Below are positions 33,301 through 36,300 of a stretch of 64,000 nt of DNA, in pieces (the first letter of the stretch is position 1; every line of letters begins with the position of its first letter). The translations under genes were made by a program, and so were the position numbers. The notes under the pieces were generated by a model, which searched no databases, had not been told where the DNA came from, and saw only the letters and a list, made by a program, of their open reading frames with translations. Origin of the DNA: Octopus sinensis (lineage: Eukaryota); contig NC_043001.1 in the NCBI RefSeq assembly GCF_006345805.1, positions 92,256,001 through 92,320,000 on the forward strand. The letters are read 5' to 3'.

Positions 33301-36300
33301 TGCGTGTAGCATTCCACCCACCACACGCGATAGACTGGTGGTTGCACGGGCGCGAAAGCTACGTTGTTATCCTCATTCCGTAAACGGTGGGTTTTAATGG
33401 GTGGAGAGATGAACCATCCTGGGGTACAGAGGATTCGCAAACTAGACTAGGGTCTGAAAGTTTGCCACACCATAGTAGGTTACACCATGGTTCCTCTGCT
33501 TTGTGGAAGAAGTAGGAAGAAAGAGTGAGTGAAAGTTGTGGTGAAAGAGTACAGCGGGGTTCACCATTCCTCCCCAACGGAGCCTCGTGGAACTTCGGTG
33601 TTTTTGCTCAATAAACACTCACAAAGGGCAGTCTGAGAATCGAAACCGCGTTCTTACGACCGCGATTTCGCTGCCCTAACCACTGGGCTATTGTGCCTCC
33701 ACACATGTTGCTGTTGCTACTGCCGTTACTTTGTTTTTACTGCTGCTGTTATTGCTATTGCAACTGCTGTTTAATTTGCATCTCATGCTTCTGTTTTAAT
33801 TGTGGTTGTTTTGTTGTTCTTAAATTAGTTGATTTCTTTAAGGTGTGGAATCAACAAGAATGTCGGTCGTTTTTATTTTTATATTTCCTTTGTTCTTGAG
33901 AAAAAGATTGCTGGTGCCACCATATTTATAACACTTAGTTCTTTTACCTTCTGCTATAACACGCTGCTGGTGTTCGTTTGACAGTTATACGAGATTCAAA
34001 CTTTTGTATAAGGTTTATGGCTTAACTTAATCAAGGACCTCAACCCAATTCCAGACCAGTTCTTCAGGCGGCACATTTCTTGGAGGAAACGCTTTTTCAA
34101 AACAGTGTTTGTTACCACCCACCAGTTTCATAATTCTGACAGCTTACACAAAACTTTTATCATCATCACCCAACTGCCAAGTTATGCCCGAATGAGGGTA
34201 AATTCTCGTTCCTGTACAGGACAATAGAATTTCTCTCTGTAACTGCTTCATTAAAGAAATTTAACTTTGGCAACTACCATATTGTCTGTCTGAGTTATGC
34301 AGTTGGTGTATCATACCATCTTCCTTTCAAGAACTTTTCCACTCGGAGATATGTTGCCATTTCAACTCGTCGGTTATTAATCAACACATAAAGATATACT
34401 ATGGCTCTAGAGATAATTCTTTTCCAGAAGATTTGATGATACTGTATCCAAGGTCTCTCTGTTGTCTATGTCAGGAATTTCAGGCGTCTGTCTTAAAATG
34501 GCATATTTTCAACTGGTGCTGAAATTTTTGGTGGATCCGAGTGGCAAATCTTTACCGAAATCCTCGATTGCGTCCATTATATTTCTCCTTCCCAATATAT
34601 TGTGACTAACTTATAGGCAGTTGTGACTCATTTTATTTAAACTTGTACTTTCGCTCCGTCTTTTTTGTTTTCTGAATGTGACGCGTATGTTGTCATACAC
34701 CGGTCCCCTCCCTTAGCCAGTAAAAAAAAGAAGTCAGCAGTAAATGTCTCCAACTCTGGAGCTTTGGAAAAGCATAGGTTTTTTACAGTTTTCCATGAAC
34801 TATGTACCCTGTTGTACACCTGTAAAATAGTAGAACTCTTTTTTTTTCTACTGGTGGTACTTCAAAATCTGAAATTTGCATCTGTTACTTGTGAACGAAT
34901 CCTTTAAACGGCTTATTGATTGGTTAGGTCTCCGGGAATTGCAACTAATTGGGTCTTCAATTATCCAGTTTTCCTCCTAACAAGCTCAGATCTCTCCCTG
35001 TTCGTATGATTATGTAATAGAATGTAACATGCAATTGCCTGTCTCTTAAGCAAATTGTTGCCAAGCTGTAGTTCTTCCGGCAAAATGTTTCTTATCTAAG
35101 GTATTCTTATTCCACAGCAGACTTGCGAATAATACGGTTTAGCTTAGTGTCAGCTACACTTTCCTTTGATCAAGCATGAGTGGGTGTTGTTGGTGTTGAT
35201 GTTGCTTTTCATTTTCTACAATTTCTGTGATTGTGCATTTATTAATGTCTACGTTTGACACCTTTTTTTTTTTTGCTAGGGAATGATACACAAAAAACGG
35301 GAATATATTGTCCATTGTTAGGTTATACAGTATGGAATAAATAAAAGAAAACTGACCTTTTAATGTCACAAACTTTTCCAACGGTTCTTCATCAGGCTCA
35401 TTTAAAGTCTCTGTGTAAAAACAAAAATAAATGAACTTCAGTTATACTTGAAAACTGCCGAGAAACTTGAAGCACATTTAAAAATTTAAGGCTCGTTAGA
35501 ACGAGTCAGCAGAAGAAAATACAACCACTACCACTACTACTGCTGCTGCCGCTGATGGTGATGATGATTCTTTCTACTATGGGCACAAGGCCTGGAATTG
35601 GGTGGAGGGAGAAGTTGATTCATAATAATAATAAGAAAACTGACCTGATGATAATGCAAACTTGTGATACGCTTCTTCATAAGGCTCAGTAAATATCCCT
35701 GTGTAAAATGAAAACCAAAATAAATGGAAGTTTCTGTCAGCTACAATTGACAACAGTTGAGAACTAACAAGAAATGGTATAAACATCTGCCGAACAAAGT
35801 ACAAGACGACTACTAGGCGACAATCATCTAGGATATGCCTGTTCAAACTGACAAAGAAATAAGAAAAAGCTAATTCCCAAACATAGTAATAAAGGATTAC
35901 CTGAAACTATCAAATGTCGAATAATAATTACAATATAAGGCAGTGACTCTCGTGGCTTCTCATCTTAACTGATTGGAAGTGTTATCATGTACATTGTCTT
36001 GGTATAAAAAGATGGGCTACAGCAAATATTCTGCTCAGTACCACATATTTGCTCGTCATTTGCTTGACTTTAATCAGATGGGCATGTCACTTAGTGGCTG
36101 ACGATATGTGCATCCCTGATCACGAGCAGAAGTAGTGGGGGAGCATCATAACCATGTGTAGAGAGGAATTCTTTGAAGTTTGTATAATTCACCTTTGGGA
36201 AAATGGGTGTTTTGTTCATCATCCTTAAACAATCTTTATACAGGGTCCTTTTGAGCGGGATGGGCTACTGGGCACGAAGAAAGTTCTAACTGGGCCCCAC

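Follow-up and report, generated by a model that had tools for sequence, protein, structure and literature searches.

An exon of 54 nt was found to be tandemly duplicated within LOC118763564 of Octopus sinensis, on the minus strand of the window analysed (64,000 nucleotides of contig NC_043001.1). The window matches the O. sinensis assembly GCA_006345805.1 at 100% identity. The two copies, designated exon A and exon B, lie between the first exon and the exon for the first of three Ig-like domains; the pair is an ordinary case of tandem exon duplication, the host gene being lineage-specific. The account we favour, to which about even weight is given, is that A is constitutive and B an optional cassette dependent on A, with no selection acting specifically to diversify the copies. 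The features of the gene are as follows:

37463..37517, minus strand: exon 1, with the ATG and the n- and h-regions of the signal peptide (MLRNNWKFLLGTFLYQFL), located by tblastn with residues 1-18 of P0001 (100% identity)
35645..35698, minus strand: exon A, 54 nt, phase 1-1, encoding (W)IFTEPYEEAYHKFALSS
35624..35763, minus strand: duplicated unit A by local alignment, in which the exon is flanked by approximately 65 nt of intron upstream and approximately 21 nt downstream
35411..35644, minus strand: intron between A and B, 234 nt
35357..35410, minus strand: exon B, 54 nt, phase 1-1, encoding (E)TLNEPDEEPLEKFVTLK if placed after A
35336..35464, minus strand: duplicated unit B, the paralogous block by local alignment
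29918..30217, minus strand: exon of Ig-like domain 1 (fold assigned from a model), 300 nt, phase 1-1
26482..26799, minus strand: exon of Ig-like domain 2, 318 nt, phase 1-1
26050..26349, minus strand: exon of Ig-like domain 3, 300 nt, phase 1-1
21355..21521, minus strand: last coding exon, with the transmembrane helix, a cytoplasmic tail of 25 residues and a TAA stop

The two exons are adjacent and homologous, are equal in length and phase, and each have their own splice sites in O. sinensis and O. vulgaris, where the acceptor (ttttacacag) and the donor (an exonic G followed by gtcagttttctt) are common to both. Local alignment of the two units of approximately 140 nt gave a score of 52 compared to 10.1 +/- 1.5 (maximum 17) in 1000 shuffles, a repeat far above chance. 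The sequence-only reading had placed a pair at 35357-35698, coordinates that coincide with the outer limits of the two exons (3' end of B, 5' end of A), and its description of identical length, phase and splice signals was confirmed, as were its translations of both exons and the six identical codons (E, P, E, E, K and F). That reading did not give the strand, which is minus for both units. No third copy was found when the whole window was searched with blastn and tblastn, giving a copy count of two; a weak match at 34327-34341 was rejected, having neither splice sites nor further homology. The intron between the exons contains a triplet microsatellite and a fragment (approximately 60 nt) of a dispersed repeat.

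In the product of LOC118763564 the signal peptide is followed by the exon A segment, after which come the three Ig-like domains, one transmembrane helix and a short tail, and the translation of exon 1, exon A, the three Ig-like exons and the transmembrane exon is exactly the O. sinensis RefSeq protein P0001. Exon 1 ends in a T, the first base of a split codon, followed by the donor gtaagt. Every internal exon of the gene is in phase 1-1, so the frame is kept whichever of them is added or skipped. An AF2 model built from nine sequences (pLDDT 74; from two sequences, pLDDT 36) contained three beta-sandwich domains and a helix at residues 345-390, and its top Foldseek matches were all multi-Ig proteins (pIgR, titin Ig tandems, IgLON and DIP, with E values of about 1e-12 to 1e-10). 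On this model each of the three ectodomains has an Ig-like fold, which places the protein in the immunoglobulin superfamily. Among the Pfam Ig_3 and V-set families, domain 2 alone was matched, below the gathering score, while domain 3 is approximately 28% identical to domain 1; a sequence search of the PDB gave no significant match. The open reading frame survived in just 0.2% of simulations of neutral drift, from which it follows that the gene is functional.

LOC118763564 is described as a lineage-specific octopus gene whose product crosses the membrane once and carries three Ig-like domains. Its family is very small: an exhaustive HMMER search of 1.84 billion cluster representatives identified 10 relatives at E <= 0.001, and those members with a visible source were from octopus. 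A protein search with the full-length protein carrying both A and B returned three octopus proteins and no others, while the read-through frames surrounding the two exons, used as queries, gave nothing new. A head-to-head paralog, P0006, passes directly from its signal peptide to domain 1 without the A/B module, so that the module is an addition particular to LOC118763564. One of the HMMER relatives is a genomic Logan contig of 980 bp (SRR11869385) in which Ig1 is the sole exon covered (nucleotide identity 73%); this contig stops short of the small exons. No mention of LOC118763564 or LOC106876419 was found in the literature searched.

The order in which the exons can be used is constrained by the junction with exon 1. 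Because the last base of exon 1 is T and B opens with AG, joining them creates a TAG (MLRNNWKFLLGTFLYQFL followed directly by a stop), while exon 1, A and B joined in that order remain in frame; B can therefore be used only after A, and the pair is not mutually exclusive. It might be proposed from their homology, equal length and phase, and matching splice signals that A and B are mutually exclusive and yield two isoforms with different N-terminal tails, an arrangement classically linked to tandem exon duplication (PMC9013439, in the portion available to us). Exon 1 joined to A is indeed productive, but the stop arising with B alone occurs in O. sinensis and, judging from the sequence, in O. 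bimaculoides as well, and a productive B-only isoform is already contradicted. Nor is joint inclusion blocked, as the two exons (54 + 54 nt) are in frame and the intron of 234 nt is long enough for splicing, leaving exclusivity unenforced. Complementarity was assessed between the region upstream of each acceptor and positions 35196-35261, downstream of B, and competing RNA structures were rejected, the duplex energies being little better than those of shuffled sequences, with 3-7% of shuffles equally good (3% for the intron pairing at -21.4, compared to -14.9 +/- 3.0). Mutual exclusivity is accordingly considered highly improbable.

The gene models differ in their treatment of the two copies. 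Exon A is present in the RefSeq proteins of both O. sinensis and O. bimaculoides, and B is left out of both, so that the earlier description of tandem coding exons upstream of Ig1 stands for A, through its exact place in P0001, and lacks this backing for B. Exon B appears solely in an O. vulgaris EVM/PASA model, which has no signal peptide and skips Ig1; in that OctVul6B annotation (Iso-Seq, RNA-seq and ab initio predictors) A is joined to B. Because this independent pipeline joined A to B, the RefSeq model may understate how often B is spliced in. We consider A to be a normal exon and B at best an optional one.

O. bimaculoides and O. vulgaris each have both units, conserved together, which makes the duplication older than the split between O. 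sinensis and O. bimaculoides. The copy number in these two species, which had been put forward as a check, is therefore two units in each, with B decayed in one: in O. bimaculoides the exon A ortholog is intact (L001 11941-11994) and the protein (P0002) carries a single A-type peptide, while the B copy (L001 12415-12465) is 51 nt long, with a 3-nt deletion and an acceptor changed from cag to caa. O. sinensis and O. vulgaris both retain intact splice signals for B. Between O. sinensis and O. bimaculoides, the 60 nt upstream of B show 8 mismatches in 56 aligned bases compared to 3 in 60 upstream of A, and the microsatellite between the exons is approximately 190 nt longer in O. bimaculoides. With the SRR11869385 contig as reference, 7 changes in Ig1 fell on the sinensis lineage and 4 on the bimaculoides lineage, so no general acceleration in O. 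bimaculoides is indicated. O. sinensis and O. vulgaris differ at 4 of 1194 coding nucleotides, too few for use.

The decay in O. bimaculoides, together with the omission of B from the RefSeq proteins of two species, raises the alternative that B is a dead pseudo-exon, a by-product of local tandem duplication that was never used or is no longer used, and that A alone matters. The B region diverges at 8 of 51 positions, at least as fast as the introns (0.095), and an open frame of 17 codons is not improbable by chance. However, the splice signals of B (10 + 12 nt) match those of A at 22 of 22 positions in O. sinensis and O. vulgaris despite 33% divergence of the exon bodies, which hints at selection for the spliceability of B; the sole indel between species is in frame, and the O. 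vulgaris consensus gene model includes B. This alternative is regarded as possible, though somewhat doubtful.

Under the favoured account, a small symmetric (phase 1-1) exon would have been duplicated in tandem within this octopus-specific gene. Exon A would be constitutive and would supply the end of the signal peptide and approximately 14 residues of a disordered, acidic mature N-terminal tail. Exon B, the younger-looking copy, with its open frame and splice signals equal to those of A in O. sinensis and O. vulgaris, would serve as an optional cassette adding a second, more acidic module of 18 residues, only after A; it would not be part of the major form in O. sinensis, and would have decayed in O. 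bimaculoides. The excess of amino acid changes in the pair would reflect a disordered tail that is weakly constrained or under mild positive selection, in a gene that as a whole evolves at or above the neutral rate, the copies themselves not being specifically driven apart. The low or optional inclusion of B and the selective regime are inferred rather than shown.

The sequence-only reading had taken the divergence of the copies as a sign of diversifying selection. Exons A and B differ at 18 of 54 bases, 17 of them in 11 complete codons and one in the split first codon (GG in A, AG in B), and all 11 of these complete codons alter the amino acid. The claim that there is no synonymous change holds for whole codons but not for Nei-Gojobori path counting, which gave Sd = 2 and Nd = 15 because codons with two hits include synonymous steps; on these counts (dN/dS 0.505/0.228) no significant excess was observed (Fisher test, P = 0.46), and the divergence of A from B gives no significant support to the earlier interpretation. 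The six unchanged codons are close to chance, approximately 4.9 being expected if the 17 differences fell randomly over 17 codons.

In orthologous comparisons, with tiny counts from just two informative lineages, and tests chosen after the pattern had been seen, exon A gave 8 nonsynonymous and no synonymous changes (dN 0.23; Fisher test, P = 0.33) and exon B likewise 8 and none, so that 16 of 16 pooled substitutions were nonsynonymous (Fisher test, P = 0.036), an outcome with a probability of about 0.03 under random mutation. Tested against the intron rate on the same small counts, the nonsynonymous rate gave P = 0.002 for the pooled exons and P = 0.038 for the nonsynonymous sites of exon A. 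For the whole gene, however, dN was 0.113 and dS 0.094 (dN/dS of about 1.2), with an intron divergence of 0.095; protein evolution is therefore fast throughout the gene and the exons would be no special target. An ortholog dN/dS well below 1, which would have told against the earlier claim, was thus not seen, though the counts are tiny and the gene-wide value is already about 1.2. The evidence for selection specific to the exon pair is weak as judged from these alignments, while positive selection on the N-terminal tail, given the 16 nonsynonymous changes, may be real.

A further element of the earlier proposal was an acidic extension carrying sulfated tyrosines. An acidic tail does precede Ig1, but the first four residues of exon A (W-I-F-T) probably complete the signal peptide, with cleavage presumably falling near T22|E23, and so would not belong to it. 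Residues 22-41 of the AF2 model are below pLDDT 50, and the EPYEEAY of O. sinensis exon A lies in this disordered segment, close to where the mature protein is predicted to begin. The motif has become EPYQQTH (EPYQQTHQK in full) in the exon A of O. bimaculoides, which makes a conserved sulfation site unlikely, and in O. sinensis exon B an Asp stands in place of Tyr; the acidic, Tyr-rich character is not conserved in O. bimaculoides. Among the B changes that could be polarised to the O. sinensis lineage, 2 of 3 add acidic residues (Y>D and Q>E).

The full proposal, in which A and B would both be spliced in and positive selection on an acidic N-terminal extension with sulfated tyrosines would have pushed the copies apart, draws on the amino acid changes between A and B, on these acidic changes, on the EPYEEAY motif and on the nonsynonymous excess between orthologs. 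It is weakened by the absence of B from the RefSeq models, by the missing acceptor in O. bimaculoides and by the non-significant paralog and exon A tests, and is judged unlikely. In a variant considered decidedly unlikely, B would be a regulated cassette dependent on A, with the stop between exon 1 and B policing the order, positive selection acting on both the number (one or two) and the sequence of the acidic modules, and a secondary loss in O. bimaculoides; were this so, it would concern octopus-specific receptors of three Ig domains with an ectodomain dN/dS of at least 1 and with possible functions such as immune, gamete or chemotactile recognition.

Symmetric 1-1 exons in genes of the Ig superfamily and of modular matrix proteins act as cassettes which add repeats to extracellular or disordered regions. 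The octopus gene resembles these in that all its internal exons are phase 1-1 and in that the duplication lengthens a flexible N-terminal segment, but it has two copies rather than an array. Acidic, tyrosine-sulfated N-termini are found in PSGL-1 and in chemokine receptors; the EPYEEAY segment is similar in that it has Tyr flanked by Glu/Asp and Pro in the disordered N-terminus of a secretory-pathway protein, a candidate only for sulfation, and differs in that the motif is neither conserved in O. bimaculoides nor retained in copy B.

Some authors place the upper length of microexons at about 51 nt. A library of neural microexons spans 6-27 nt (bioRxiv 10.1101/2024.09.17.613571), and the octopus exons, while short, symmetric and frame-preserving like these, are at 54 nt approximately twice that upper limit; in O. 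sinensis neither ttttacacag nor the sequence immediately before it was seen to contain a UGC element. They are small exons rather than microexons in the usual sense, and the earlier label of micro-exon was set aside.

The survey of tandem exon duplication by Ivanov & Pervouchine 2022 (PMC9013439) covers unannotated duplicated exons as well. The octopus pair is like the duplications described there in that two neighbouring exons share homology, length and phase, and one of them lies outside RefSeq; it is unlike them in that B is not interchangeable with A, in that a disordered tail rather than a folded domain is encoded, and in that B has decayed in one of three species. A tandem origin, equal length and kept splice signals are shared with exons 4, 6 and 9 of Dscam1 and with substitutions of duplicated human exons, as far as the available parts of those accounts go (PMC9741552, PMC8373072). 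Unlike those mutually exclusive clusters, as there described, the octopus pair has no productive B-only mRNA and allows joint inclusion in frame, and no convincing competing RNA structure was found.

Taken alone, one further tandem exon duplication in an uncharacterised, octopod-restricted gene is of little weight. The gene evolves at approximately the neutral rate with its reading frame kept, as recognition molecules are expected to do, and a family-wide study could be worthwhile. The pair also offers a clean case of a duplicated exon which is unable to replace its parent, the junction with exon 1 creating a stop, and shows both the gain and the decay of a duplicated exon between close species.

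The positions 35357-35698 were found to be the bounds of two homologous 54-nt exon units of gene LOC118763564 (designated A and B), both on the minus strand; the two units described in the sequence-only reading were thus borne out, with the strand added, and ttttacacag precedes and gtcagttttctt follows both copies. The distance from the start of A to the start of B is 288 nt. With two bases left over 5' and one left over 3', the reading frame gives IFTEPYEEAYHKFALSS for A and TLNEPDEEPLEKFVTLK for B. The copies differ at 18 of 54 bases, 17 of them within 11 codons, every one of which changes the amino acid, and one within the split first codon (GG vs AG), while six codons are identical. 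Homology reaches approximately 65 nt upstream and 21 nt downstream of the exon, and the local alignment score of the ~140-nt units was 52, compared to 10.1 +/- 1.5 (maximum 17) for 1000 shuffles. The pair is therefore a tandemly duplicated small exon, a term preferred here to "micro-exon" because A and B exceed the usual microexon length limits; no third copy of the small exon was found in the window. The intron between A and B (35411-35644) also contains a CAT/CAC/CAG-type triplet microsatellite, approximately 190 nt longer in O. bimaculoides (L001, the O. bimaculoides locus, 12100-12300), and a ~60-nt fragment (35569-35626) which shares 80% identity with a dispersed repeat (25796-25854) adjoining the Ig3 exon.

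Over 22,163 nt the window matched O. sinensis assembly GCA_006345805.1 (chromosome CM016863.1) at 100% identity. The coding exons of LOC118763564, together with exon B, lie as follows:

37517-37463, minus strand: exon 1, MLRNNWKFLLGTFLYQFL + T
35698-35645, minus strand: exon A, first small exon
35410-35357, minus strand: exon B, second small exon
30217-29918, minus strand: Ig1, Ig-like domain 1
26799-26482, minus strand: Ig2, Ig-like domain 2
26349-26050, minus strand: Ig3, Ig-like domain 3
21521-21355, minus strand: last exon (TM), transmembrane helix, 25-residue tail, TAA

Exon 1, A, Ig1, Ig2, Ig3 and TM together comprise 1194 nt, the translation of which is identical to the O. sinensis RefSeq protein P0001 (397 amino acids; 'uncharacterized protein LOC118763564 [Octopus sinensis]'), and all internal exons are of phase 1-1. 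Pfam matched domain 2 only (Ig_3/V-set, sub-threshold). An AlphaFold model, built with a nine-sequence family alignment as input, had a mean pLDDT of 74 and showed three beta-sandwich domains and a C-terminal helix; its best PDB matches were all multi-Ig structures (pIgR, titin Ig tandems, IgLON, DIP/Dpr and contactin; E ~1e-12 to 1e-10). Residues 22-41, which cover the peptide from exon A and the beginning of domain 1, had pLDDT values <50 and are probably disordered, going by the model. The Ig1 (29918-30217) and Ig3 (26050-26349) exons, both 300 nt on the minus strand, share ~28% protein identity, suggesting that a domain was duplicated within the gene at an earlier time.

When 1.84 billion cluster representatives were searched exhaustively with HMMER, 10 proteins reached E <= 0.001, a tiny family. 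One of these, the three-domain paralog P0006 (396 amino acids), whose first exon is at 58297-58359 (plus strand) and whose remainder lies past the window end, is arranged head-to-head with LOC118763564, ~20.8 kb from the start codon of the latter. In P0006 the signal peptide is followed at once by domain 1, without a peptide of A/B type, so the small-exon module was added in LOC118763564 specifically. The host gene encodes a three-Ig membrane protein, is restricted to its lineage and evolves rapidly.

A is an ordinary exon, present in both the O. sinensis RefSeq protein and the O. bimaculoides protein P0002 (found in NCBI, UniRef and EukProt). Exon B is in neither and was identified only in P0003, a model from the O. 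vulgaris OctVul6B annotation. P0003 begins in an exon far upstream (window 57238-57134, minus strand), enters exon A 47 nt ahead of the usual acceptor (35699-35745, minus strand), leaves out Ig1 and is spliced from a donor inside Ig3; because its product has no signal peptide, P0003 probably reflects a modelling error or a non-productive transcript. Moreover, the annotation merges Iso-Seq and RNA-seq assemblies and protein alignments with Augustus and GeneMark predictions via EVM and PASA (PMC10700109), and since transcript evidence is there combined with ab initio predictions, P0003 is no proof of B splicing.

The final base of exon 1 is T, which gives TGG (Trp) with the GG of A and TAG with the AG of B, so that exon 1 joined to B reads MLRNNWKFLLGTFLYQFL*, with the stop at the junction. 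Exon 1 + A + B is in frame (G+AG = GAG, Glu), as is exon 1 + Ig1. A productive transcript can thus include B only after A, a constraint on order which was absent from the sequence-only reading. Exons duplicated in tandem usually come to be used in a mutually exclusive way (PMC9013439); for A and B this is rejected, as a productive B-only mRNA is excluded by the TAG. There is no bar to joint inclusion (108 nt in total, 234-nt intron). Competing RNA structure was also considered: an A-rich stretch ~100-160 nt downstream of B (35196-35261) is partly complementary to U-rich tracts upstream of both acceptors (35700-35726, 25 nt at 80%; 35421-35436, 16 nt at 81%), with duplex energies only marginally better than those of shuffles, which is not convincing. 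In O. sinensis and O. vulgaris, copy B would be either an optional cassette dependent on A or a silent pseudo-exon.

At the O. vulgaris locus (L002) both exons were identical to those of O. sinensis; three differences were seen across 461 nt, all of them intronic. L001 carries both units, and the duplication is therefore older than the sinensis/bimaculoides split. Exon A is intact there (L001 11941-11994), while B (L001 12415-12465) has a 3-nt in-frame deletion and the acceptor caa instead of cag; the AG two bases downstream would give a 49-nt frame-shifting exon. The 60 nt upstream of O. bimaculoides B contained 8 mismatches in 56 aligned bases and 5 gap columns, and those upstream of A 3 mismatches in 60. 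As cag is found in A of both species and in B of O. sinensis, parsimony would place the loss of the B acceptor on the O. bimaculoides lineage, where B, judged by its sequence, is decayed. The O. bimaculoides ortholog also stops four codons earlier (…YLNKD* vs …YLNKDQTDE* in O. sinensis; L001 19424-19438).

Nei-Gojobori substitution counts for the small exons and the host gene
A vs B, window: Nd 15, Sd 2; dN 0.505, dS 0.228; Fisher p = 0.46
Exon A, sinensis vs bimaculoides: Nd 8, Sd 0; dN 0.23, dS 0; p = 0.33
Exon B, sinensis vs bimaculoides: Nd 8, Sd 0; dN 0.26, dS 0
A + B orthologs pooled: Nd 16, Sd 0; p = 0.036
Whole gene, 393 codons: Nd 98, Sd 22; dN 0.113, dS 0.094; dN/dS = 1.2; p = 0.48

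The divergence of the pair had been read tentatively as diversifying selection, which the comparison of A with B did not uphold (p = 0.46). Ortholog dN/dS was indeed not well below 1 (exon A, 8 nonsynonymous to 0 synonymous), but the gene-wide value of 1.2 means that the pair is not special; fast protein evolution is a property of the whole gene, with per-exon dN/dS from 0.7 (Ig1) up to ~2 (Ig2, TM). Under random mutation, zero synonymous changes would be expected with P = 0.16 among the 8 in exon A and P = 0.029 among the 16 in A + B. Relative to intron and flank divergence (0.095 over 5145 aligned sites), nonsynonymous sites were changed more often in exon A (8/41, p = 0.038) and in A + B pooled (16/77, p = 0.002, with B counted as coding where it is probably noncoding). 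Every selection test was picked after the data were seen, and diversifying selection is weakly indicated, by small post-hoc counts, and is not specific to the pair. The disordered tail is the fastest part of the gene, at ~2x the average, on eight substitutions. With the paralog as a rough outgroup and read by eye, 5 of 6 polarisable exon A changes fell on the O. bimaculoides lineage, including E>Q twice and Y>H; a relative-rate check of Ig1 against a more distant octopod contig gave 7 sinensis and 4 bimaculoides changes, with no general O. bimaculoides acceleration. Pseudogene status of LOC118763564 was ruled out, as its 397-codon frame is kept, although an open frame survived 120 random substitutions in only 0.2% of simulations (P = 0.002), and all indels are in frame; all cysteines are conserved between O. 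sinensis and O. bimaculoides. The pattern fits a rapidly evolving recognition molecule.

The net charge of the A peptide is approximately -2 in O. sinensis and 0 in O. bimaculoides (IFTEPYQQTHQKLALPT), and B would add approximately -4. The signal peptide's hydrophobic core extends through W19-I-F21, and the only position fitting the -3/-1 rule is after T22, where cleavage would leave EPYEEAY... as the mature N-terminus. Tyrosine sulfation had been suggested, and Tyr25 is in a plausible context in O. sinensis. The ortholog does not keep that context, and the Tyr shared by both A copies and O. bimaculoides B is replaced by Asp in O. sinensis B; a conserved sulfation function therefore appears unlikely.

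Elsewhere in the window, a ~1.4 kb block occurs twice in tandem (~1000-4000), with identical long open frames (1388-1789 / 2881-3198 and 1551-1877 / 2960-3286). Both copies are flanked by ATT/AAT-type microsatellites, and the block looks like a duplicated transposable-element fragment.
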